Positions 1 through 17,460 of a stretch of 17,832 nucleotides of DNA are shown here, in pieces. A model generated the notes under the pieces. That model saw only the letters and a program-made list of their open reading frames with translations. It searched no databases and was not told where the DNA came from. The position numbers and the translations under genes were made by a program. Positions within the stretch are counted from its first letter, which is position 1. Every line of letters starts with the position of its first letter. The DNA comes from Octopus sinensis (Eukaryota), in assembly GCF_006345805.1 (NCBI RefSeq), contig NW_021824729.1:1-17832 (forward strand), read 5' to 3'.

Positions 1-577
1 ATGATTGTATCTACACTTCTTTACTTACAAAATACCCAGAAGAGTAATTTTTCTTAACTTTGTGGATTGTCATTCCGAATATAAATATATTTTCCATCCC
101 AACCTGTTCGGCCATTTCTACATTGGGCCCATCAAACGTCCCCAGAGTGACAGCCACGTTCAACTGGCAATAAATCAACTGACCAACCATAAATTTCATG
201 TTTCCAGTTCCAGACGCTTCAGTTCCTGAGAGTGAGAGTTTTTCACTTAAATCAGCTGCAGGGACCATTTTCTCTACAAACGACTTTTTATAATCCGGAA
301 GGACAAACACTCTCAGGTCTTTATTGGTCTCCGGATCACTGTTTACCACAACAGCCACATTGCATATCAGTTTGATGATGAGTTTTGCAATTCTGTACCC
401 GGGAGGGGCCTTTCCCCCAATTATGACAGTCCTGGGGACGACAGTGTAGTCATCCAAACCAGCCTTGACCCGTTTGAGGCGGTTGTAGAGCGTTATTATG
501 TGAAGGCAGCTTAGAAGGTATCGTTTACTTTCTTGAATTGGTTTGATATGCACATCAAACATGGTCGAGGGGTCAAT
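1..577 (-). pseudogene. PYG: Glycogen phosphorylase, internal fragment covering the PLP-binding region; probably non-functional
   Basis: [56 protein letters not shown] (PLP lysine), [17 protein letters not shown]. Removing two 24-nt GT..AG introns (+ coordinates 164-187 and 11-34) restores MKFM|LN and SG|YN. The conserved KRIHEYKRQ reads KPIQESKRY. The 5' part is replaced by the LINE tail at 576. Continues past the left edge of the window. Confidence 0.93.
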
Positions 578-596
578 TATTATTATTATTATTATT
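576..596 (-). repeat. (TAA)7 microsatellite; 3' tail of the LINE
   Basis: (ATT)7 on +, about 45 bp downstream of the last LINE stop codon (641), directly abutting the phosphorylase coding sequence. Confidence 0.85.
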
Positions 597-2790
597 TAAG
601 CCAAAAACAGAATCACCGTCTTAACCATTAACTAACGTGTTCAGGTGATTCCGACACTTCTCAACAGTCTAGCCATCTTTTCACGATGTTCAGACCGTGA
701 CCCCACACACTTTCTGTATGTACGGTGAAATGCTTGTGGTCCATCTCCACGATCCCTCCCATTTGCCTCTACAAGAGACTCCAGTGTTCGATGGACAATT
801 TTCATGTCGGTATGGTCCTTCAGTATGTTTATGGATTTTTTTTGGATTTTCTCGATTTTTAGTTGGTTCGTTGCCGCCAGGTTACAGCCCCAAGCAGCAC
901 ATGCATAGCCTATTGTTGGCTCGATATACTGCTTGTAAAGGGTCTCTACCCTGGCGGACAAGTTCTCCCACAGTTCGAAAGAAAGGCTTTCACAAAATTG
1001 ATTTTCTTTATACAAGTTGACACGATTGATTCAACATGAGGTGAGAAACAGAGGAAAGTGTCAAACGTTACACCCAATATCTTCTGTGTTTTCTTTTGTG
1101 GTATTGGGACTCCATTCAGCGTGACTTCAATAATTTTCGTCCCCATCTTCCTGTTTTTCGTGTCCTTCATTTATGAAATCTGTTAGTGTGGTGAGGAAGG
1201 AGGTCGTTGACAATCCTTCCTTGAATCCATGTTGAAATGTGGATTGTGGGAGGAAAGGGCGAATATGTTTTAGAACCAGTTTTTCCAAGATTCTTGACAG
1301 CACACATATAAGGGATATTGGTCTATAGGAGCCGGGGTCGTTTTTCGGTCTTCCAGGTTTTAATATTGGCCGGATTTTTGATAGTTTCCATAAGTTCGGT
1401 ATAGAGTTCGTGAATAATGATGTGTTATAGATCGTGGTTAAAGCATTTATTGAAACTGGGCCCAAGTGTTTTAGTAGAATAAGCGGAATTCCATCCGGTC
1501 CACATGAGTTTGTTTTCTTCTGATTCGAGATTGTTTCAGACACCTCTTCAGGAAGAAAATAAGTCGTCGGGGGCCTTTTGGATGGCTTTGATTTTAATCT
1601 TGACTGTGAGTTCATTTTTTTATAAGGAATATGACTAATCTTGACACAGTGTTTCATAAAATTGTTTAGATTGAGCTGATATGTTTCTGTTTTACGCTCG
1701 TCAGGATTCTTTAAGCGTCTCAACATCGTCCACATGGCCGAATAGAGGCTTGTTTATTCATGGCTCTAGAGATTCGGCTGAGCTTCTTCTTTGGACTTGG
1801 TTGGTATTATTCGTAATAAGCATGTTTAGAGCCCTGATTCGATCGATGATTACTTTGGGTCGATACTTTCTTTTCTTGAGGCTGGTTCTTTCTCTGATTA
1901 ATTTTTTCGTTCTTGAGTCATATTTTGAGCTCCCACTTCTTATACATGCTCTTCTGATAATCAAATTTCTTGCATCTATGATAGTTTTGTTGAAGCTTTC
2001 CACTGCCCTGTCCAAGGAAGAAAAATTCTTAGGGTGAAAGTTCTGGAGTCTTGAATCGACGTAATTTGCGAAAGCATTCCAATCTGCGTTTTCGTAATCA
2101 TAGAAATAATTTGGTTTCAGTATGAGATGTGGAGAACAGTTCATTCTCATTATCATTGAGTGGTGGTCACTTCGGAGATCATAGCGGACCGACCACTTGA
2201 TGATAGGGGAAAGCCGAGGTGAGCAGATTGATAGATCTGGCGATGTCCTCGTGTCCTTAGAGTTGTAGGGTGTTCGAGTGTTCTTTTTCGGGTTGTTAAG
2301 GATTATTAACTTCTGCAATTGCGATATCAAAAGGTTCCTCTGGCATCGGCAGTCTGATATCTGAACCAAGCGGGATGCTTCGCGTTCAGATCTCCGCATA
2401 AGAGTAAGTTATCCAATTTATCAAGGCTTGATAGGTCAAAACGATAGCCCTTCTTGCATGAACCTGGGGGAGGTACGTAGACATTGGCGATTTCAAGTCT
2501 TCCGTAGGAGGTCATAAGTGAGATTCCAATTATTTCGGTGTTGGAGTCCTTCTTTAGGCTTGTATACGGTAAGGGATTCTCGAAATATTTTATTCCTCTT
2601 TTTATAAGGGTCAGTAGACCCCCTCCATGCTCCGACTCGCGGTCACATCGTAGTGCATCGTATCCAGCAAAAAGAGGAGTAGGGATCCGTTTCGAAAGTT
2701 TCGTCTCTTGGAGAAGACAGATATCTATTCGGTTCTCCTCCAAAAAAACTGGCAAATCGAGAATCCAAACAACTTTTTAACATACAAAGC
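576..2790 (-). mobile_element. Decayed non-LTR retrotransposon (APE endonuclease + RT, (TAA)n tail; Jockey/I-group-like, clade not assigned)
   Basis: APE motifs IDICLLQETK, YVPP, LCGDLNAKH (2327-2755) and SPDLS..SDH (1758-2399). RT N-terminal motifs GPDGI, LKPG.P..PGSYRPISL..VLSRILEK, QHGFK.G.ST (1127-1735). Thumb and C-terminal motifs KILGVTFD..L.F..HV (946-1170) and LYK.YI.P...YAC..W (641-1015). Several frameshifts; RT core missing. Confidence 0.92.
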
Positions 2791-3040: not shown

Positions 3041-3069
3041 AACGATGGAAATTTTAGTGTTGTTTTGTG

Positions 3070-3680
3070 GATGGTCGTATTGTATCAGATTAAGATACTT
3101 CTATACCATTTAAAGTTCAAAGTGGGTCTTACCAAAAGCAAAGTGGAACAATAAAATTATCATTATTTAACACCGATGAGGCCAACCTCTGAATTCTAGC
3201 AATTACGGTCTTGCATTAAGATGGAGTGATTATGCATAAAGAGTTAATCATGGTTTGTTATAACTTTCAGAGTCGATCCTTTATTAAAGGATCCAGATTT
3301 CAATTCATAGCAATCCAAGGGACCTGATACAATCAATGAAATGTACATTGGCACCTCGTGAACTTGTTGCAATGACATTAGCCCTTGTTTCTTTATTGAA
3401 CGACCCTTTTTACGGGATATGTGGATGTTGAGATTTGTTTCATCCAATTAAAAATAATATCGGACTTCCACAGCTGCCTGTGATGGATAAAATTTGGCTC
3501 GATTGCTCATAAGCTTTCTGTTAGAATTAAGCATTCTCTGGAATTGAACTGCATGGTTAGTGCAGTCACACAGTCGTTCACATACAGCTCTCGTCATCAT
3601 GTGGACCTCTCCCAATTTGCATGACCAACCTAACCTCCTTTGAGTATATGTTCTTTGCTCACAGTTGATTGAGTTACGGA
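3070..3680 (-). mobile_element. Tc1/IS630-like (DDE_3) transposase remnant
   Basis: PILFL/LDETNLNIHISRKKGRSIK (first catalytic D) and GPLDCYELKSGSFNK in 3244-3447; degenerate LN.IE..S near 3090-3120. Many stops and frameshifts; no TIRs found; boundaries approximate. Confidence 0.75.
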
Positions 3681-3869
3681 ATCTATACACATAAGCATGG
3701 ACCTAAGCTTGAAAGACAATCCACGACTAATGTATTCCACTCCACACCTGTGTCGTCTACGTAGAACACGCCAATAATGAGTAGAATATGGCATTGAAGG
3801 GCTCTTCTCTCCGCAGTATAGGAGAGTACGATAACTCCACATAACGTAAACACAAATTGATCTTCCTCA

Positions 3870-4620
3870 TTCGCTACATGGACCAACACTGAAATTTGTT
3901 AGAAATTTTTCAGAAACAGGTTTAAGATCATTTTCTGAGACAAAGTTTGTGTCATCTGCATATATAATTTCACTTAAATTAATTCTCCAGAAATAGTTTT
4001 GAGAGCTCTCAGTAAAGCCTCGAATACGACCGGAAAGTCCCCTGAGATGTTCCAACCAACCCGTACAGTCAATTCAGTATCGGACAATAGAAAACAAATT
4101 GGGCTCTATTATCATCATCATCAAGAAAATTCTCAATTATATCCAACAATTTTTCCCGTTAAAAGTATCAAAAGCACTGGACATGTCCACACTCAGTATT
4201 ATGAAATTACTCTTGACATGTGGCACATATCCATTGTGGGATCAGACTGCATCTTCGGTAGAGCGACCCCTTCTGAATCCACTTTTTCCAGGCAACAAGA
4301 AATTTAAACATCAGAGAATATCCGGCTAAGGGTTATCAGAGATAGTATCTTTCTCAATTTTCAGAGTAATATTATGTTCTTGAAGTTTTTAGTGATCTTT
4401 TGCTCTTTCAGATTCATGAAATTCCTTCACCAAGTTTCAGAGTGTCTCAAATACAATATAGAAAATTTTTGAAATTTGGGTTGGCAATTTGCATCGGGCA
4501 AGTTGTCTGATCTGACTGCCCTGTTGTTTAATTTGTTGATTGCCAAGTTAGTTTTTTTAACGGGGGTCGGCAGATTCAGACTTGTTTGCTGTTTGATGAT
4601 CTTGCTTATTACGTAAGACA
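3870..4620 (-). mobile_element. Second, older non-LTR reverse transcriptase remnant
   Basis: LAINKLNN.RA..SDNLP (4427-4621), LRKILSLITL.RI (~4320-4360), SGFRRGRST.DAV (~4250-4285), ILSVDMSSAFDT (~4164-4200), IIYADDTNF (YADD at 3951-3962). Scattered over several frames. Confidence 0.85.
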
Positions 4621-4835
4621 ATTTCCCACAACCTTAATAACAAACAGTAAATAAATCTCCAAACAATGAATGCTGAAGAATGATTTGAAGCCATAAAAAT
4701 TTTCTCTAAATTGTTAAATAATAAATAATTTATTTTAAAGCTAAATACTCGAATTTAACATATTTTTGTAATAAAATTCAAAAGTCCGTTTAATATTTAA
4801 TGTTGCACGAATCGTACTCTGTCAACGTCAGCAAA

Positions 4836-6930
4836 ATGTATTCCAATAAAAAGCAGCAATGCTCAGCAAAGCGATAAAGTTTGAACTCCCTTCCACAGTC
4901 GAGGTGGAGCGATCAGCCTTTGTCACCATCCAAGAATCCCAGCTCTTTGACCAGTCGGGGATACAAGAAAATGGACTGGCAGACATCCGAATGGTAAAAA
5001 CACGGCAAACTAAGAAAGGGCTGTTACAACCCATCCATGCAATGTCGGACGTGTGGTCTGAACATTGACGAGTGTCCCGGCCATTTCGGTGTGCTAAAAC
5101 CATCACTGCCAGTCCTCAATCCACGATTTTCTGGGCACATCCTGAAGACGGTCAAAAGTGTGTGCAAGATGTGTGGACACATTCTCCTGGGGAATAAAAA
5201 GACCTTCAGTCACATCAAAAAGATGGAAAAGAGTCTCAACTACCTGCAGAAGAAGACAGAGACGCACAAATTGGAGGGGAGTGAGGATATTGTCTGCCAC
5301 AACTGTTTCACTGTGTGGTGTGGATTTATTGGCAGGAAAGGTCAAGAAACACACTCCTCTGAACATCCTGGAGGCTCACCTCGAGCGGATCACCTCCTAC
5401 GACACAACCCGACACGTGAATGCCCTTAAAACTGCTCATTCCTCACAAAAAGTGCGCAATGCTTTGAAATGTGGGACTGCCCTCAACTCGGTCGAGCTGT
5501 TCAATATTTTGTCGAGGATATAGTGGGCGATTTGGTTGAGTTGAAGGACTTTGGACTGATTGCGGGGAATGTGAGGAGCAGGACTCGGACGGAGAACATG
5601 TATTTCCGAGCAGTGCCTCCATTCGTCCGGCTGTCACATCCTCTGACGAGTGAGTATTGGATTGACCAGTAGGAAACGGCAAGACGACCTGACAGTGAAA
5701 TTAATGCACGTCATGTCCCTCAACGACTACTTTGCATACCTCAACATGACATTCATAAAGCAAATGGTTGTCCTCTCTGTGGATTGCAGACCATCTACCT
5801 CACATTGCAATACGAGTGTTGCATCATGATTAATATGGCCAGCATCCCCAAGGAATACAAACCACCCAAACTCGTGAGGTCATACTTCACTCGCCTGAAA
5901 GGCAAGCAAGGACGTTTTCGGGGTAACGGGAAGAGGGTGAACGGGGAGGACTGTCATATCGCCCGACCCGGAATAGACCAAGTGTCAGTCCCCCAGATAT
6001 TGACGTATCCCGAGTGTGTGAGGGACACCAACATTGAGGAGAAGACTAATAGTGCGGCGGCAACACCCCTCTGCTGTGATGATTTACAAGGCGAATGGGC
6101 GATCAGTGTAGGGGGACTGTTTGACTGTAGTAATCTGCGGTACGGGGAGGTGGAACAGAGGGCGTGTGATTTGCGAGTGGGGGATAGAGTGTTGAGGCAT
6201 ATTAGGGGACATTGTCAATCGACAGCCCTCTCTCCACAGGGAGAGCATTCATGTGAGGACTGTCTTGACATCGTAGTTCAAGATTGGCAACCAGAGGACA
6301 CTCCGATTCAACGAGTGTTGTTATACTCCCTTCAATGCTGACTTTGATGGAGAGCCTTTGACGGCAGAAATACAGGATTTCATTAGTGGTAGTCCCTCCG
6401 CTCATTACAGGCCTGTATTTGCTCACCAGGAAGGACGTGTTCTTGACGAAACCCCAAGTGGTCTCACTGTTGAATGCAATGAGGGGGTCAAGAAAGTGTC
6501 CTCCAGTCCCCCAACCCGCTATTCCGAGACCGGTGACTTTGTGGACTGGGAAGCAGATGATGAGTTACCTCCTCAGTCACCCCACTGAGTCGAATCAACA
6601 CATCTCCGTCAACATCCAGGCCAAAGGGAAGAGTTATTCGGGCAATGAAGAGTTGTATGACTCGTGTTGGCAAGTAGTTTGATGGGTAGACTGCTACATT
6701 GACGACTCGGAATTGATTCCGGGCATTCTCGACAAGAACTCGCTCGGCTTGGGGAGTAAAACAAACATTTTCTACTACATCCGACGAGAGTACGGGGCTG
6801 AGACGACTGTCCAGTGTATTGCCCGTCGATTGGCTGTGGCTTTTTTGAGTATTTGGTGGTTGACACGCGCAGTGCTGAGACTTGGTTTTACTGTGAGGTT
6901 GGCGGATGTCGTGCTCAGTTCGGCCTCCAA
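4836..6930 (+). pseudogene. POLR3A: RNA polymerase III largest subunit (RPC1/RPC160), N-terminal half, heavily mutated
   Basis: D.RM|G..C.TCG....CPGHFG (clamp Zn), DDLTVKL, RLKGKQGRFRGN (KQGRF is RPC1-type rather than RPB1 or RPA1), RTVISPDP, NRQPSLH, FNECCYTPFNADFDG, IQDFISG|LYLLT, PVTLWTGKQ, LGLGSKTNIFY. Introns at 4994-5018, 5650-5672, 6253-6276 and 6389-6410. Many indels; ends at ~6930. Confidence 0.93.
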
Positions 6931-6940
6931 GTAAATCAAG

Positions 6941-7250
6941 GACGAGTGTTCCGAATCGGGTAGGCGCTTGGGAGTGCTGCCGAGGTGGCCAACCGATGTC
7001 TTTTATACTCAAAAGTATATTTTGAATACTTTTATTATTTGGGATCGAATTTGACCAACTCTGAACTGTTTGACTTGATTACGGAAAGTAGGAACATGTC
7101 ACGGAATTTGAAAAGTTTCGGAAAACAAAAATCCACATCAATTACTACCGCAAAGAGACTGGCCGACGTGCAGACTTTTAGTTTTTCGTAGATTTTGGGA
7201 GATGAGATGACAAGTCTGGCTGGACTGAACTGTCGTTATGTGATATCGCG
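6941..7250 (+). pseudogene. POLE: DNA polymerase epsilon catalytic subunit, short internal fragment (late polymerase-domain region)
   Basis: AEVAN..L(--)LYSK / [42 protein letters not shown]|ILGDEMTSLAGLNCRYVISR matches POLE [56 protein letters not shown]. Clean 24-nt intron at 7168-7191. Confidence 0.9.
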
Positions 7251-7271
7251 GTATTGGTGTCATATTGTCAG

Positions 7272-10200
7272 AGATTACACGTTCGGGTCATTTCACGTGG
7301 TTTTTCCATTTAATTACAACTTTGATGCCTGTTTTGTGGCGGTAGTTATTATTGTGAGTGTTCAGTTGAAGGACGCCTTTAAAATAATGTGGATTGTCCA
7401 CAAAAAGTTGAGAAATGTCCCCGATCAGCCCCGACGTTGATGAGTGACTTGAATATCAGCATAAATGTGCGAGTCCTTATCATTCCCAGCACTTTTCTGT
7501 GGTATTCGAGGACGACCCATTCGAGAACAGGATATTGAGCAACTTCAGAGTAGGGAATAAGTCATATTCAGTTACTGAGTGATGAGTTTTGTGGAAAAGG
7601 TGCAGAGATCAGTCATTCTGGAAAAACAACTGCAGGAAATGGGGGCAAGCATGTCGAGTGAGTGTTGTGTGTCATAAAAGTCGACAAAATGGATGAATTG
7701 TACGCCACAGTGGAGCAAAGGAATTCCTCCGCGTACATTGAGCGGGTGGGGATTCACCGTCGGCAACAAGAAGGGATCAAAACCCTTTGTCAGATCAGTC
7801 TGGAGGGGGTCTCTTTCAAAGCCCTGTCAGACCCCTCCGTTTTTGGGGAGGACAATATTCTGTGGTTTATGAAGCGAGTGGAGCCTGAATGGTGGATTGT
7901 GTGAGTGAGGAGTAGTTTTGACGGTGGGGAGACATCATTCAGCACTCTCTTTTGTCGTTATGTCATTTTTGAGTTTGACGAAATGAGGAGTGCTCTCCGG
8001 GACTATTCCGTGCCCCTTATCGTCTGGAATAATTGTCGATTTTGGGGACTGTTGAGAGGGGCAGAACTGACGGGGACATATTTGAGTAGATTAGTGTGCC
8101 TACTGGTAGAGCAAGTCGTCATTCCATTCGGGGATTTCGAGATTCGAAAGTCACTGTGCCCCCTCAAGTATTTCTACGACCTCAATTTGAGTATTTGTAT
8201 ACGTGGATGGCAGAGTCGGGGCAAGTGAGAGTGGCCTACGGACCCAGCATCGAGCCTTGGCTCTAATTTTTCCACTGCCTTGACTTGATAACGTCGCCCA
8301 GTCGAGATTGCAGTCCCAAGTTGAGTTGGTTCGACATGTTCCGCTACGTTCTTCACGGAAATTGGAGAGCCCGACTAAAGTTATCGTTGATGTACCGCCT
8401 TACGAATGACCCATACAACTCGACTGAGTTCATCGAGTGGTCCTGGGAGTCTCTCGTGTTTGAGAACACATTGGTTACTCTCATCAGTTCATGGCAGGGA
8501 AGTTTGTGTTGAACGGAGACTTGCAAATAAACTGCAAGACTGCCTCGAATTATGACGATTATCGACTGGTGCATATTCCGAATGCCTGCTTTGAGTGGTA
8601 GGGCCAAAGTCTCCTGGATATGTCCTGGTGATGCTTACTCTCATTTCACGGTGATTCCAATCCACCGGAAGTACGTCGTAGATGTTTTGGTGAGAATATT
8701 TGAGTGATGCAGACACACGACACATTTCGGGCTTTCAGGTCGAGTGGGATGGATGTCAAGTTGAGTATTTCGAGTAATGTTTCTCTCTCGTCTCTCAAAT
8801 TCTATTCGGGGTCGATTAATTGGATATTCGACATTATTGCTGTCCTCACTTGACCACCTGTAGACCACAATCCAACAACTCACCCGTCCGATCCGCCTGA
8901 GTCCTCTCTTTGGACGACCATTCTACAAAAGAATACAACTTTCTCGCCATTTCAGGTGATATATTCCACTATGAGTAGAGAGTTTAACATTGCTATGAAT
9001 CTGGACAGTTTTGTGATTGAATACTGGATGACGGGGAAATGGTGGATGGGTACAACTAAAGTGGGTTCCGTGTCCTTGGACAGTTGCCTGACTACTCTGT
9101 CCTCCCCCTCCAAGGGAATGTACTCAGACGACCAGTCACTGTGTGGAAAATCAAATCTTTTCATTTCATACAGGAGAGGGTCAACGTTGACTTGTTCGGT
9201 AATAAAAGTGATGAGGCCAATTTTCTGATTAAGTTTGACTCGTGAGTGTTTTTGGTTACGTTTTAGACTGCGATATTACCACTCCCCACATCGAGACCAG
9301 ATTGTCTCCCCCACCCCGCCTCCACGGAGATCGAGTCAACCTACCAGGCATGTAGTTATATTGACATTCAGCACAACACAATGTAATAGTGAAGGACACT
9401 GTGGTGAGGTGGACTAACGAGAACAGAGCCGTATTTTATGAGTTGATGAATCACTACCAACGAGGGGTCATTCTCCGCCGTAATTTACTTTCGGGATAAT
9501 CTCCTGCATTGAACGACACGAACAGAAGGTGGTCGAATCCAGAGAGGAGTTGGTCGAGCAGGATGAGTGGACTCCGGACTTGTTGGAGCGACTGGTGGCC
9601 GACGTGGAAAACAAGTTTTACGTGACTGGAGACGTGGTGATGGAATGTGTTGATTGGTAGACACAGACATGTCTGGTGGATGATTTGTCAAGGCCAAAGT
9701 CGTGTGGAAGTAATGATGTGACAAGTCGGAATTGTTTAGGTGAGTGGACTGACTGAGTGCAGTCGAATTTAGGAATGTCCAATTGAGTTTGGTGGTCCAA
9801 TCGGGCTTCATTATGGCTGTAGCTAGGAAAGCCCAGTTCTTCCAACGTGAGCACGGATTGGTGTGGAAGAACAACGGTCTGAGGTCGAAAATAAGTTGGA
9901 TTGGGACTATCGACTCAATGGAGGTGAGTGGGCCATATTTATGCAGTATTTTGCCAATGCGAACGAAGGGGGCAATCTGGAGAGAATAGTGTCGAGGTGT
10001 CGTTGTGACATATTCTACTCGTCCTACGCGGCCATCGAGGAATTGTTGGTGAGTGATGGCCAGCCTCCCTCCGAGGACGAGGACAGTCTGGAGACATTCA
10101 CAATGCCCACCACGACCTGTCAATATCGACTAACAATGGCAATATTCGGTGATTATTGACATTGTGAACAACCTCCTTCTCTACTTTGACCCCGAACGTA

Positions 10201-11532
10201 AAAGGTCGTTGGACAGACTGCAGGAAATGAGACTTCAACTCGACTTGTGCACACTTCCGGAACACATTAATCGTATATTCGAACTGAAGAACGTCCTCAG
10301 GTCTGTTTGTATTGACAAGTGCAGAGAGTTGGCAGGGGAGTGGAGGAAATTGGAGAGAGAGCATTACTTTCTGGTTCGTGAGCATGGCGGGCGGAGTGAA
10401 CTACTCACCAGACTGAGGGATCGAATCAAATCTACTCGAAAGGAGTTGTACAGCACAAGTCAAGAATTGTCACATATGTTGTGGTATCAGTCCTCCTGGT
10501 TGTATTCTTAGTTGCTATAATAAGAGGAGACATCACTTGCTAGCACACTCACTGACCCTCCCAGACCTCACTCCCCCACTTCACACCCTCGAGATATGTT
10601 TCAAGCATGCAGAGTGGACTATCACTCATGACGACAGTCAACTCAATGTCATTATCAGCAACTTTCTGTCATTTTCTGTCCTGGCATGATTAGATATAAC
10701 AAAATTGGGTCTGCAGACGACCCCAAGTCACATTTACTTCACTTGGGTTGGTTTAAGGTGTCGGATCTGCATCCCAACTCGTTTTACAGAGTTGTGTCTT
10801 CACTTATTCTGAAGGACGTGATTATTCCTACGGACGAGGAGAACCCATCTGCCCACAGTCCCTCAGTGCGGATATACTGTCGGGAGGGAGTCCCAGTTGG
10901 GGGAATATCCATGAAGGAACATTTGGAGATCAATGTAGCTCCCACATCCGCCTACCTCACCTATGACTTTTACTTGTTGGTGGTTCAATTCTTCTTCAGT
11001 CAGTCATCTGGTGTGTCGATGAGTTCATTTGTAGGGATATCCATAAAGAATAAGCGGAGTAAGGAGAGTGGGTCTACCGAATATCGGGACGACGTGACTA
11101 TCATGAAAGTACCCTCCCCACTCACCCCAGGACAGGGCAGCCTCCAACATGCAGTTTGTGTACGTCAATATCACTCAAGTTCCCTTTCTAATTAGTTTTA
11201 AGGTTGTTTTGTATCGATAATTTTGCAGAGTTTGGGGTAACAAGTTTTGGGAATTTACCAACTTTTCCATCACAATTCCAACATTGGAATACCACGATCG
11301 AATGTTCAGTTGGTTAGATCTGTTTATGTCTGTCAAGAATGACTATCAGAAGATGATTGTGACTCATGTGACTTAATTTTTCCTTAATCTATAGGCTATC
11401 AAACAACGACTCAAAATCAACAGAAAGGGGAGTCCCCGTGTTTCTCATCCCCAAAAGCAAGAAGACAAGGCGAGAAGGCTTCTTGGACTCGATGGAAATA
11501 AAAAAAAGAAAAATTTTTTTAAAAAGAAGTGA
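7272..11532 (+). pseudogene. BLTP2: Bridge-like lipid transfer protein 2 (KIAA0100/Hobbit/Fmp27), C-terminal part through the native stop; 5'-truncated and frameshifted
   Basis: Collinear matches: FPFNYNF; HFSVVFEDDPFE; MDELYATVEQRN; PLKYFYD; SPKLSWFD..R..LHGNW; TNDPYNSTE..EWSW; TASNYDD; HDTFRAFRS; ERIVSRC.C..FY.SY; MIIDIVNNLLL; HLLHLGWF; PVGGISMKEHLEINVAP; DD...MK|DRAA.N..FVY..I.QVPF.ISFK; LEYHD..FSWLDL; EDKAR.LLG; stop TGA at 11530-11532. Many 21-27 nt introns; frameshifts at ~7590 and ~11237, among others. Confidence 0.93.
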
Positions 11533-12688
11533 GTATTAACGAGTGAAATGAAATTATTTATTGTCCTTGCCCATTGGACGACCAGAATATTCATGTATGT
11601 TACATGCATACAGTATGTATGATAACATGTTAAAAAGAGACCTTAGATAAGACTTCTGTTTTAAATCAAGTTGGTTATCATTCCTACCTTGGAATATATC
11701 GTGGATTTGAGAATTTCTTACGATTTGGAATTAAAAGACATTAAATATAATGTGGCACGTTCTACAAATTCTAATAGGGATGTGTCATCATTCAAAACCT
11801 AAAGAAAAATGCGTTTCACGCAGGGTTTAGTAATGCAACGTAGAACATTAAAAATGCCTTTCGATTCCGTCAGTTTTATTCCGCATATTCCCGTGTTTGA
11901 AAGTCTCACAATGAAGATGAGTTTTTTAACAAATATTATTGTCCAACGTGTTTTCTTTACAGAATAATTTGTGAAATCATGGATGATGACACAAATCTTT
12001 CACAATGGCATATGAGTAACTAATTACTTTAATTAGTGAGATTCGAATGAAGAACTTGAAATATCTAAGTTGGCTTTAGGCATTGGCAGGATTCATAATA
12101 ATTTGAGGATCAGTTCATAATAATTTGATAAAAGCAGAGACTTCAATGGATAAGGTTTTTTGCTCTTTGAACAAATCCATCTCCGCGTTGTCTAAATCTC
12201 TTTGTTGTCTTGTAATACAGTCTTGTTCAGGTTTATAAGTCTACCTGCCATTTTTAGAGAAAAAGCGGCTTCATGAAACATTTCCTTTTTAGAGAACATA
12301 CCCGTAGTTAATATCAAATCACAGGATAGGTTTTTAGTATGGTTCAATCACCAGTCCATCTCTTTTTTCTGTCTTGGATTGGCAGCGTGTGGGAGCTAGG
12401 ACAATGATTCGATATTTTTTTAATTGAAAAAGACACTAAATGTATTGATTTGTATTTATTTGAAAGGAGTTGACTGAACATTGTCGCTATCTGCACATCC
12501 CAATAGGAAATTACCCCCGGACGTGTATTCCTTTGGGTGTAATCTCTTATTATGAAAAATGGATGATGGATGATGACCATAGAAATCGAAAACAGTTTTT
12601 GGGAAAATCAGATGGCAAAGGATGAGGAATCAAAACTATCCTCAAGATATAAAATAGTGTTAAAATTCACGTATGTATATAATATGCT

Positions 12689-12830
12689 TCTGACTCCAGT
12701 TTTGCATGCAAAAACGTTCATAAAACATCAAAATTGATATATAACAATATTTTTAATTTATTAATTTATTTATTTTCTTATTTACATTGTAAGTCTGACA
12801 TCTTAAGTTAGATCGTACATAGTTCCTTAG
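12689..12830. repeat. ~140-bp direct repeat, copy 1
   Basis: TCTGACTCCAG...GATCGTACATAGTTCCTTAG, nearly identical to 13183-13320 (a few substitutions and a ~4-nt length difference). Contains the 14-bp palindrome TTTTGCATGCAAAA (12700-12713). Confidence 0.95.
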
Positions 12831-13182
12831 TTTGAGATAGTAAAATGGTTTAGAGGAGGTTGAACAAGTTAATAATAGACGATCAAAGGAGGCAGTTGTC
12901 CTGGAAAAATCAGGTCGATTGGTTGCACACAAGTGGAGATCTCGGGAGGTGTTTTGTCGGAAAATAAAGACTCATTTTTAGTTAGAAATATCTAAAGTTC
13001 AGACAGTTCAGCTTTTCAAATTTGTTAATTGACTGATTTATAACATTTTAGGGAATTTTTTAATGTATTCTAGAGATTTTATCAATAAACTGAATAATTC
13101 CAGGCCTCTTCTAGAAGGGTCCTTATGGATAGCGATTAGCATACATTGTAGTAGCCTATAAAGAAACTAAGGTCTAGGAACG

Positions 13183-13320
13183 TCTGACTCCAGTTCTGCA
13201 TGCAAAAACGTTTATTAAACATCAAAATTGATATATAACAATATTTTTTATTAATTTATTTATTTTCTTATTTACATTGTAAGTCTGACATCTTAAGTTA
13301 GATCGTACATAGTTCCTTAG
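13183..13320. repeat. ~140-bp direct repeat, copy 2
   Basis: See copy 1; the copies are separated by a 352-bp spacer. Confidence 0.95.
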
Positions 13321-13696: not shown

Positions 13697-14747
13697 ATGA
13701 ACTCATGCTCGCTTTGTACCTGCCAGAAATTCGTATGTAAATCTACTTGGAATCGTAAATGTGATTCTTGCCATCATTTCTTGATCTGTCATGGTTTGAC
13801 TTATATGCTAAAGTTGACTTTGTAGTAAAATCTAACGAACGTCAATTATCTCAAATCTATATCGGAATTTTTAAAGCTATTTATATAAAAACTATCAAAT
13901 TCCAACGTCATTACAACAATTTGTTCAATTGGTTGCCATACTTCTTCCAGGAAATCAACTCGGCGAAAAGCTCAATATTTTGGGTTGGAGTTTGGAGAAT
14001 TTTAATAGATATTCTAAAGTTATTCAATGTTATAATCATTTTAGAATATTGAAGGAGTTGAAAACGAGCAAAGCAAAATATCAAAAGAAGAAGAAAACTT
14101 TATTTTATTAAAAATTCAAAAACTTATATAGATCATAGCCAAGCATATACCTCAAAACAGTACAGACTAAATGATTCCAGGAATACCCACATGCAACGTT
14201 CAACGTTGAAAATTTATATCAAAATAATTCTCCAATTTTAGGAATGTTTATGTACTCTGTCTTTCAATACCAATATGAGCTTTATATGCGTCAAGTTTAT
14301 GAAAATTTCACCAAGCAGATGCAAAATTTTGTAATACAGAAAGCATTTTCACAAGAGCAGTTAATCAATAGCTACGCAGAAAATAGTGAGCATAAATACA
14401 CTCGTTCAAATATACATATACATGCCAATCGGTTACTCCGGAAATAAGAAAAAATATAAAACAAAGAAAATTTTTCATTCCAACAAAATTTTTATGGAGG
14501 TATCATAACTGAACGAAACGGAAAGAAACGAGTTCTCTGTAGCAAATGTGGAAAGACATTTTACGACCGAGGAGCCTTAAAAATACATGTGAGTGCAGTC
14601 CATTTGTGTGAATCTCATTACTGTACTGTACCTGGCTGCAAAATGAGCTTTTCTTCCAGAAGAAGTCGGAATAGACACAGTGCTAATAAAAATCCTAAAT
14701 TGCATTGTTCAACGCGTTTTTTAAGGAAAAAGTCAGAACCCCCCTAA
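13697..14747 (+). pseudogene. BNC: Basonuclin/disconnected-family zinc-finger gene (compact); frameshifted as assembled
   Basis: N-terminal Cys domain CSLCTCQKF...RKCDSCHH; LFNWL...LNILGWSLENF (aligns with LLDRL...LHALDWTLQDY, 1-nt frameshift at ~13968); ISKEEE. Intact C2H2 pair at 14520-14705, not in the ORF track: [61 protein letters not shown]. Stop at 14745-14747. Introns at 13794-13825 and 14019-14044. Could be a live gene with assembly indels. Confidence 0.85.
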
Positions 14748-15280
14748 GGGATATCACCAAAATGATTTCAAAATCAGATTTATCATATCAAAAAATGTGA
14801 TTGTCTATATTTCTAACATTTCATTCAAATTAAGTGAATTTGTTTTCTTATTTTTACTATCGAAAAATTATTTGTTTTGATCTAATTACCACTTTAAAAA
14901 GGTTCAAAGGGATTAGATTTCGCTATCTCAAAGACCTCACTTCTCGATTTCTACCAACCGTTGTACAATTTCTAATTTCTAAATTTGGAAATTTAGTTCT
15001 AGGAAAATCTGAAGTTAGAAAATTTCAAATTTTTCACGCTTTGCAAAAATATTTGGTTATCATGCGATCTATAAAGTTTGCGTCTCTCTCAATGTCTGTT
15101 CCACTTAATTAACATAACAATTTCCCATTAGAAATACGAAAGACAGGACAAGTAACATTTCGTGATTCCAACACGTAGGAGAAGACTCCTCGTTTTGACT
15201 CGATTTTCCTCACGAGTACCCACGCAAGCGCGCAGTGGTTGTGCCTCAGATGATGCCTCCTTTAGTGGATTACAAATCAA

Positions 15281-16035
15281 ATGGATAACGGCGCTGAAAT
15301 CACATCCGTGAAAAACAACGAGCCTCCTTGGTTCAACACTTTTGATGACTACTCAAAAACTCAAAGGGATTAATGGGATTTAAGATATCCTTGATAATTA
15401 AACCTTGGAGACTGTCTTGACTTTTATTTTGCTTGTAAATTTTGAATTTTATTTTGAATTATCAAATCACCGAACCAATTGTTTTTTACAACCATGTTAA
15501 ATCTCTTTATCATCGGTTTTTTATTCGCGAGAATATTTCTTGTCTTTCTCCTGAAATGGCTAGTCGGATATATCTAAGTGTCAATATGAAGGACGAATCT
15601 GTTGAATTTAAGAAATTATTCAAAGAAGCTAAATCTGAGACTTACGTTTTTTTGAAGAACAATTATTTCCGGATTTTCCTTTTATCTCCTGAATATCTCG
15701 AATTTTTAAACAATACTGACGTTTTCAAGCCCGAACTGAAAGCTTACAGCCATTAAAGTTGTTTAAACTTCTCTAAATCGAAAAATATGTGGAAACATCC
15801 AAGTCAGCAAATAGTTAATACTTATTTAATCTTATTTTTTAGGTAAATAGACCTCGATATCACCCAAGTTCGGCTCTCAGTGATTCAAGGACTTTTGGGA
15901 ATGAACTTTCTTCCAGAATCGAGAATAAGAGTAGTAATAGAACTCAGATGGTTGTTATTTAATAGTTCGATAATAAAACAGGGCAATGAGAAGTCCTTCG
16001 ATCTCTCTCATATTCAACCTGATGATATTCTAGAG
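15281..16035 (+). pseudogene. RGS-domain protein, Axin-like; frameshifted and interrupted by a hAT insertion
   Basis: PPWFNTFDD/LLKNSKG..GFK..L/LGDCLDFYFAC (Axin-type DF.FAC at 15419-15436), then KSLYHRFF...LFKEAK.E....LKNNYFRIFL.S.EYLEF (15442-15756). Later putative exons continue to ...QPDDILE, which ends exactly at the hAT TIR. No DIX domain or GSK3-binding site seen in the window, so Axin identity is tentative. Confidence 0.7.
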
Positions 16036-16614: not shown

Positions 16615-17460
16615 TAGGGCAACCAAAAAATTGCACTTTTTAATAAAAAAAATTGCAAAAATGAATTTTAAAAATTGTAAAAAATTGCAAAAATAATTTT
16701 TTTTAATTGTAAACATTACATTATGCAAAAAATTAACGAAATTATTTATTGTAATAGGAAATCAAATATTCCTGAACATTTTCAGGTTTAAAGTTCCTCT
16801 CTTTACTAAGAATTTTCGTCAAAAGAGATATTGCCCTTTCGATAGATGCTGAACTTGCGCTACATTTTCTGAGATGTGAATAAACTTCTGGCGATAGATT
16901 CTTATTTGAGAATTCAAGAATACTTAGTATTCCTGATTTCTCAAGCTTTTTTGATATATAGGATTTTATGTCGCATGGATCTGATGTAAAGTCTAGGGTG
17001 TTTAGATCACCATAAGCTGTTGCAATGGAGTAATCAATAGGGCAACCAAAAAATTGCACTTTTTAATAAAAAAAATTGCAAAAATGAATTTTAAAAATTG
17101 TAAAAAATTGCAAAAATAATTTTTTTTAATTGTAAACATTACATTATGCAAAAAATTAACGAAATTATTTATTGTAATAGGAAATCAAATATTCCTGAAC
17201 ATTTTCAGGTTTAAAGTTCCTCTCTTTACTAAGAATTTTCGTCAAAAGAGATATTGCCCTTTCGATAGATGCTGAACTTGCGCTACATTTTCTGAGATGT
17301 GAATAAACTTCTGGCGATAGATTCTTATTTGAGAATTCAAGAATACTTAGTATTCCTGATTTCTCAAGCTTTTTTGATATATAGGATTTTATGTCGCATG
17401 GATCTGATGTAAAGTCTAGGGTGTTTAGATCACCATAAGCTGTTGCAATGGAGTAATCAA
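16615..17460. repeat. Exact tandem duplication, 2 x 423 bp (16615-17037 and 17038-17460)
   Basis: The two copies are identical by eye, including homopolymer lengths; each starts at a TIR. Confidence 0.97.

Follow-up and report, generated by a model that had tools for sequence, protein, structure and literature searches.

The unplaced contig VCDQ01013216.1 of the Octopus sinensis assembly GCA_006345805.1, analyzed here over its entire 17,832 bp (hereafter the window), carries a unit composed of pieces of three genes, RPC1, POLE and BLTP2, that stand head-to-tail in this order, all on the + strand, at approximately 4859–11532. The unit is a dead, neutrally decaying, non-processed mosaic pseudogene, which is an already known kind of object. 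As to its origin, it is moderately probable that ectopic copying and joining of gene pieces built the mosaic in a dicyemid genome and that it then drifted neutrally. The three pieces are as follows:

4859..6931, + strand: N-terminal piece of RPC1 (RNA polymerase III largest subunit), decayed, human residues ~13–712
6970..7251, + strand: thumb-domain piece of POLE (DNA polymerase epsilon catalytic subunit), human residues 1004–1082
7267..11532, + strand: C-terminal piece of BLTP2/Hobbit (KIAA0100), decayed, ending in its own stop TGA at 11530–11532

The window DNA is eukaryotic. A Pfam scan of the three + frames detected RNA_pol_Rpb1_1 (E 1.1e-18), RNA_pol_Rpb1_2 (E 4.5e-11) and RNA_pol_Rpb1_3 (E 1.6e-18), POL2_thumb (E 2.4e-14) and Hobbit/BLTP2, the last one once in each + frame (E 9e-32, 2e-21 and 1e-18), and a search of solved structures assigned the first piece to human RPC1 (E 8.4e-49), clearly above Rpb1 and Rpa1, and the second to human POLE (E 9e-15). 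The limits of the pieces come from a purpose-written protein-to-DNA aligner, which permits frameshifts and GT..AG introns of 15–60 nt; the human RPC1 and POLE references were checked residue by residue against PDB chains, while the BLTP2 references are full-length proteins from an exhaustive protein search. In the spliced alignments 4874–6910 corresponds to human RPC1 residues 18–703 (608 codons, 39% identity), with weak homology extending to ~6931 and a likely ATG at 4859, and 7267–11526 corresponds to residues 821–2222 of a 2225-residue BLTP2 reference (1210 codons, 37% identity); by tblastn the BLTP2 piece is colinear with 28 full-length references. Between the aligned pieces lie 59 nt (RPC1/POLE) and 15 nt (POLE/BLTP2), and no homology to transposable elements (TEs) was found in either gap. 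The GC content of the pieces (45–51%) is above that of the flanks (27–38%). A preliminary description, made from the letters of this DNA alone, had reported the three homologies at positions that agree with the Pfam, PDB and spliced-alignment results within a few bases, and its statement that the pieces share one strand with no intergenic or TE DNA between them holds for the two gaps. Its reading of the unit as the outline of one putative transcription unit, with the start of RPC1 at one end and the stop of BLTP2 at the other, is likewise supported. The start that it gave has to be moved, since the ATG at 4836 is out of frame and the RPC1 frame begins at 4859.

A second copy of the mosaic is located in the 430-kb contig VCDQ01000373.1 of the same assembly (locus L004), which is colinear with the window over a glycogen phosphorylase piece, RPC1, POLE and BLTP2, as far as window position 12116. 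Both junctions occur there at 92–97% identity, with private indels. Because substitutions and private indels distinguish the copies, the window and L004 must each have been assembled from reads of their own, and they probably represent two haplotypes or else a very recent duplicate. In the window the RPC1 piece has 8–9 frameshifts and one stop and has lost 33 residues across the catalytic NADFDGDEMN loop, and the BLTP2 piece has 10 frameshifts and 6 stops. In L004, the better-assembled copy, there are 10 frameshifts in RPC1 and 4 frameshifts with 5 stops in BLTP2. Every piece thus bears frameshifts, stops or deletions, and for this reason the unit is regarded as a pseudogene. Eight BLTP2 frameshifts of 1–2 nt (at 7417, 7439, 7587, 8471, 8599, 8684, 10106 and 10135) occur in the window but not in L004, and single-base gaps between the copies are numerous relative to substitutions, at a high ratio of ~1:3; some of these private frameshifts are probably uncorrected long-read errors in a small contig. 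An in-frame BLTP2 stop at residue 1108 is common to both copies, which differ in this piece by 10 synonymous and 29 nonsynonymous changes, a neutral ratio. A functional BLTP2 part was considered and ruled out by this shared stop and the neutral change between copies. A functional fusion gene should give one open reading frame (ORF) after splicing, and L004 is also frameshifted and interrupted by stops; what is found instead, namely kept introns, disabling mutations and neutral change, fits a non-processed pseudogene.

The introns of the unit are GT-AG mini-introns of ~15–38 nt, mostly 21–28 nt, that often start with GTGAGT or GTAAGT and finish with CAG or TAG. There are 18 of them in the BLTP2 piece of the window and 19 in that of L004. 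The POLE piece has one in the window and two, possibly a third, in L004, and about five were called in the window RPC1 piece, where 4 of the 5 calls fall at the same codons in L004. The POLE and RPC1 introns of the window are:

7168–7191, + strand: POLE intron, 24 nt, phase 0, from the spliced alignment
4994–5018 (25 nt), 6108–6130 (23 nt), 6262–6276 (15 nt, doubtful), 6389–6410 (22 nt) and 6666–6689 (24 nt), + strand: RPC1 mini-introns

As a control, the aligner was rerun with other dinucleotide pairs as decoy splice sites. For BLTP2 the GT-AG score was 1316, vs. 1180 ± 20 (maximum 1223) for 59 decoys, and 18 introns were called with GT-AG, vs. 6.5 ± 2.8 with decoys. For RPC1 GT-AG gave 653, vs. 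622 ± 8, the best among 80 pairs (79 decoys); chance gives ~2.4 calls here, so that only two or three of the five RPC1 introns surpass it. The DNA length of the pieces is close to their coding length (in RPC1, 613 codons against 634 residues; in BLTP2, 4,221 nt against 1,383 residues), and an intronless processed chimera was the first impression drawn from this closeness, later overturned by the mini-introns. After the BLTP2 stop there is no poly(A) tail. An A-rich run at 11500–11530 is coding and represents the conserved, lysine-rich BLTP2 C-terminus, which matches the reference. No flanking direct repeat that could be a target-site duplication was found around the unit. From the retained introns and the missing poly(A) tail it follows that the pieces were joined at the DNA level, and retroposition or template switching by reverse transcriptase is excluded. 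The preliminary description had argued the same on the ground that all pieces keep their introns; the introns are indeed retained, only they are not of normal size.

Pairwise alignment with L004 also defines the junctions:

6932..6969, + strand: junction 1, RPC1–POLE
7252..7266, + strand: junction 2, POLE–BLTP2, 15 bp, frame kept, identical in L004

Junction 1 contains a GTAAAT...GGGTAG string (6930–6962) and the scar of a 243-bp deletion at 6962/6963, by which POLE residues ~925–1003 were removed from the window copy. In L004 these 243 bp are retained and encode POLE residues 943–1003 together with a 28-nt intron; with introns removed, the joined POLE piece matches human POLE 941–1082 in a single stretch (160 bits). 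At junction 2 the 21 bases 7251–7271 form a GT...AG intron-like string that preserves the frame. GT..AG strings therefore span both junctions, and one breakpoint of the phosphorylase piece is likewise inside an intron, which hints that breaks favor the introns of the parent genes, or else reflects chance in too few cases. Each copy has lost what the other kept. The window is without 99 bp of RPC1, which in L004 read ...DEMNIHVPQGEQ..., and L004 is without 32 bp of POLE and without ~2,450 bp in which the first ~215 RPC1 codons lay. Taken together, the two copies show an ancestral mosaic that comprised RPC1 1–~712, POLE ~925–1082 and BLTP2 from 821 to the end, and that deletions are now eroding. 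As further differences between the loci, window 3044–4835 is not found in L004, where 115 bp of unrelated filler replace it and the 5′ part of RPC1, and L004 has a 1.66-kb insertion (L004 1958–3617) relative to window position ~11783, just 3′ of the BLTP2 flank.

The only piece with a visible source is that of glycogen phosphorylase, found at the left end of the window, where it is split by a long interspersed nuclear element (LINE):

1..577, − strand: glycogen phosphorylase piece, human residues 558–727, with a 24-nt in-frame GT-AG intron at 164–187; it resumes at 2755–2817 (−), beyond the LINE
578..2754, − strand: LINE insertion with endonuclease and reverse transcriptase remnants, broken frames and a (TAA)n tail

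The closest database relatives of this piece are three short predicted proteins of ‘Octopus sinensis’, all others being at most 61% identical, and the loci of those proteins are in three further contigs, L001 (959 kb), L002 (1.03 Mb) and L004 (430 kb). The LINE, which made a target duplication of ~3 bp, is recent or polymorphic, since L001 and L004 show the empty site. A 643-bp phosphorylase piece (residues ~541–728, one 24-nt intron) with sharp ends, its 5′ break lying within a mini-intron, is present at L001 10555–11197 and at L004 10555–11197 with 97.2% identity. The three copies of this piece diverge by 3.5% in DNA and differ in 11 amino acids over 169 residues, which looks neutral. In L001 it is flanked on both sides by more phosphorylase sequence (residues 521–752), and no further L001–L004 homology was found within ~10 kb either way. 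The piece is hence in two unrelated contexts, which means that short gene pieces get copied into unrelated places in this genome. The L002 locus (8546–11417) holds an intact glycogen phosphorylase gene of 835 codons, 61.6% identical to human PYGL, without a stop or frameshift and with 14 GT-AG introns of 22–28 nt; RPC1, POLE, BLTP2 and cyclin are all missing from its flanks. The idea that the phosphorylase locus is a segmental duplicate of the mosaic region was rejected, as no flanks are shared. Next to the L001 piece, an inverted N-terminal phosphorylase piece (L001 11264–11665, related to L002 8615–9014 at 74% identity) forms a second scrambled mosaic.

The gene structure bears on the organism from which this DNA came. 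Animal introns of less than 30 bp are reported solely from dicyemids and myxobolid myxozoans (PMC13644364); the median dicyemid intron is 27 bp long (PMC6543705). The kidneys of O. sinensis are home to Dicyema japonicum, whose genome has 36.7% GC, 49% repeats, many copies of LINE ORF2 and 1.24% heterozygosity (PMC6736024). Introns in the loci studied here are mostly below 30 nt, as in dicyemids: 22–28 nt in the L002 phosphorylase gene and mostly 21–28 nt in the pseudogene. Given introns of 22–28 nt and an intact gene that contains them, dicyemid rather than octopus DNA is indicated, and the contig and its relatives are quite probably DNA of a dicyemid (Dicyema-type) parasite that was assembled with that of its octopus host, most likely as contamination. 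We infer this origin from intron size, the intact mini-intron genes and the host–parasite link. No octopus-type gene structure was seen in ~80 kb of loci. In L004 an open 227-codon ORF with a cyclin N-domain (12599–13279, −), followed apparently by a short intron and then the cyclin C-terminal fold, lies 0.5 kb away from the mosaic and is probably a live gene. A ciliate origin was also considered and is unlikely, since the exons are without in-frame TAA or TAG and have 45–50% GC. Protein searches brought no close relative. An exhaustive search of a library of 1.84 billion proteins with a 125-aa BLTP2 ORF gave best relatives at 43–53% identity, and arthropod and priapulid proteins were the best BLTP2 matches at 35–43%; a word-indexed search that listed only proteins of query length returned one insect fragment (30% identical) for the BLTP2 piece and nothing for RPC1; and in an exact look-up of nine window ORFs in a protein collection none was present. 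Literature searches brought up neither a report that octopus assemblies contain dicyemid DNA nor one of dicyemid–octopus transfer.

How, then, might the three pieces have come together? We infer a copy-and-join mechanism acting at ectopic sites. Partial, intron-bearing copies of RPC1, POLE and BLTP2 would have been taken from dispersed parent genes and stitched together in the course of non-homologous or template-switching break repair, or by an unrecognized carrier element, after which the product would have drifted neutrally and shrunk stepwise by deletions. Such ectopic joining is favored by the 643-bp phosphorylase piece, copied between two otherwise unrelated loci, and the three-gene mosaic itself was seen in just the two colinear contigs. 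From its layout, the ~0.5-kb POLE island would seem closer to a templated insertion at a repair junction than to the survivor of two multi-kilobase deletions.

Several observations weigh against this account. Close RPC1, POLE and BLTP2 parents were not returned by the protein searches, which leaves room for a collapse by deletion (see below), and large deletions, the very process such a collapse needs, do occur at the mosaic locus. No terminal repeats, target-site duplications or carrier marks surround the unit. The inverted-repeat search found no convincing bracket, the best pairs being AT-rich, 16–27 nt long and 74–88% complementary, so that the earlier remark on missing transposon ends is borne out as far as this search reaches; Helitron ends were not searched for systematically. 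Microhomology at junctions is the defining mark of events of the fork stalling and template switching/microhomology-mediated break-induced replication (FoSTeS/MMBIR) type, and the likeness of the mosaic to them is one of layout. Furthermore, substitution divergence between the window and L004 is ~4.9% in RPC1 (5751–6750) vs. ~1.0% in POLE and BLTP2 (7251–11750), and this approximately fivefold excess is not explained by copying and joining; a different genealogy may lie behind it, or conversion by yet another pseudogene copy of RPC1. As for the dicyemid origin, contigs of 0.4–1 Mb are large for a contaminant.

Among the alternatives, a collapse by deletion is possible but doubtful. According to it, RPC1, POLE and BLTP2 were once same-strand neighbors in a duplicated or redundant segment and were fused by two large deletions, one reaching from mid-RPC1 to mid-POLE and the other from mid-POLE to mid-BLTP2. 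Sharp-ended deletions with little or no filler are indeed seen between the copies (~2,450, 243 and 99 bp), the three pieces lie on one strand in 5′-to-3′ order as in a gene array, and the window's RPC1 and BLTP2 carry lesions per kb in numbers of similar order. Yet this explanation requires three neighboring genes and two multi-kilobase deletions that spared a POLE island of ~0.5 kb; moreover, phosphorylase, the one piece that can be traced to a source, is a short copy in an unrelated context, and none of the other genes flanks its intact locus. That dicyemid gene fragments, ligated end to end, were integrated in the octopus germline is very unlikely, even if the octopus assembly lists this contig and the related ones, some of them in contigs of 0.4–1 Mb, and even if dead pieces that abut without spacers resemble concatemers of foreign DNA. 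The octopus would not be expected to splice the 14 mini-introns of the intact phosphorylase gene, an open cyclin gene stands 0.5 kb from the L004 mosaic, and the ~80 kb of loci are devoid of octopus-type gene structure. The higher GC of the pieces (45–51% against 27–38% in the flanks) could be taken as a foreign mark, but it is ordinary for coding DNA to exceed its flanks in GC. In a milder variant, likewise of low probability, dicyemids would build such mosaics themselves by re-inserting the extrachromosomal DNA circles of 0.6–0.8 kb that they produce, to which the phosphorylase piece (643 bp) and the ancestral POLE piece (~0.5 kb) may be compared in size.

The two remaining explanations are less probable still. 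A long-read assembly in which chimeric reads or collapsed sequence fused unrelated loci might well leave an unplaced contig of 17.8 kb, private frameshifts of 1–2 nt that resemble uncorrected read errors and a perfect 423-bp tandem duplication, all of which the window has. Nevertheless both junctions recur in a 430-kb contig that differs by 1–5% in substitutions and by indels of its own, so the misassembly that the preliminary description had kept in view as a way to overturn its reading does not hold, and an artefact appears most improbable. A chimeric retrocopy, made when a LINE reverse transcriptase switched from BLTP2 to POLE to RPC1 mRNA and its product was inserted, can hardly be credited at all. 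Template switching in the 3′-to-5′ direction would yield the order observed, the lengths of the pieces are close to their coding lengths, and LINE activity is attested nearby by the insertion at 578–2754, missing in two sister loci; against this stand ~25 GT-AG introns retained at positions common to both copies, together with the lack of a poly(A) tail 3′ of BLTP2 and of a target-site duplication.

The rest of the window holds various other features. Upstream of the unit, 3044–4835 consists of transposon debris with a DDE-transposase-like ORF (3244–3447, −) and a reverse-transcriptase YADD motif (3867–4055, −), both without Pfam confirmation. Downstream of it there are a C2H2 zinc-finger ORF (14500–14750, +) and the C-terminal two-thirds of an RGS domain (15442–15756, +). 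Further on, 16615–17037 and 17038–17460 form the 423-bp tandem duplication, 100% identical and either genuine or an artefact of assembly; its ORF has a possible hAT-like C-terminal motif and no Pfam match. Rfam and tRNA scans of the window gave nothing.

With regard to its significance, the mosaic is ordinary genomic debris, and it shows that this genome copies and joins gene pieces of 0.5–4 kb and then erodes them. The consequences reach further for the public Octopus sinensis assembly, which appears to hold dicyemid contigs of up to ~1 Mb. At least three ‘octopus’ glycogen phosphorylase-like predicted proteins are affected, one on the window contig as well as XP_036354618.1 and XP_029657430.1, all of which have the look of mis-modelled pieces of parasite genes. 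Work on cephalopods that draws on this assembly, be it on gene content, horizontal transfer or repeats, would carry the error along. On the other hand, if the contigs are dicyemid, they provide long-read sequence of a poorly known animal genome, and intact genes with 14 or more mini-introns would be useful for the study of minimal-intron splicing. If the transfer from parasite to host were true, it would represent horizontal transfer from an animal parasite to its host.

The genes described here resemble dicyemid genes (Ogino, 2010, cited in PMC6543705) in having several GT-AG introns of ~22–28 nt each, and the dicyemid genome (~37% GC, rich in repeats and LINEs, host O. sinensis) is similar to the DNA at hand, the difference being that the present records are filed as Octopus sinensis. 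The mosaic itself may be compared with several systems. Maize Helitrons and rice Pack-MULEs carry joined, intron-containing pieces of several unlinked genes, and the mosaic shares with them the intron-bearing pieces arranged head-to-tail, the single orientation (mostly so in those elements), the outline of a chimeric transcription unit and the usual lack of function. It differs from them in that no terminal inverted repeat (TIR) or target-site duplication was found, no transposase or Rep/helicase gene is near, and it was seen as two near-identical copies instead of a dispersed family. With retrocopies made by LINE template switching, such as U6-L1 chimeras, it has in common the head-to-tail fusion on one strand and a LINE-rich genome; unlike them, it keeps introns and is without a poly(A) tail or target-site duplication. 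Like non-processed pseudogenes and the templated insertions of FoSTeS/MMBIR, the mosaic consists of DNA-level copies with introns kept, sharp breakpoints and neutral decay, and it further resembles such insertions in the short POLE piece (~0.5 kb) placed between two larger segments.

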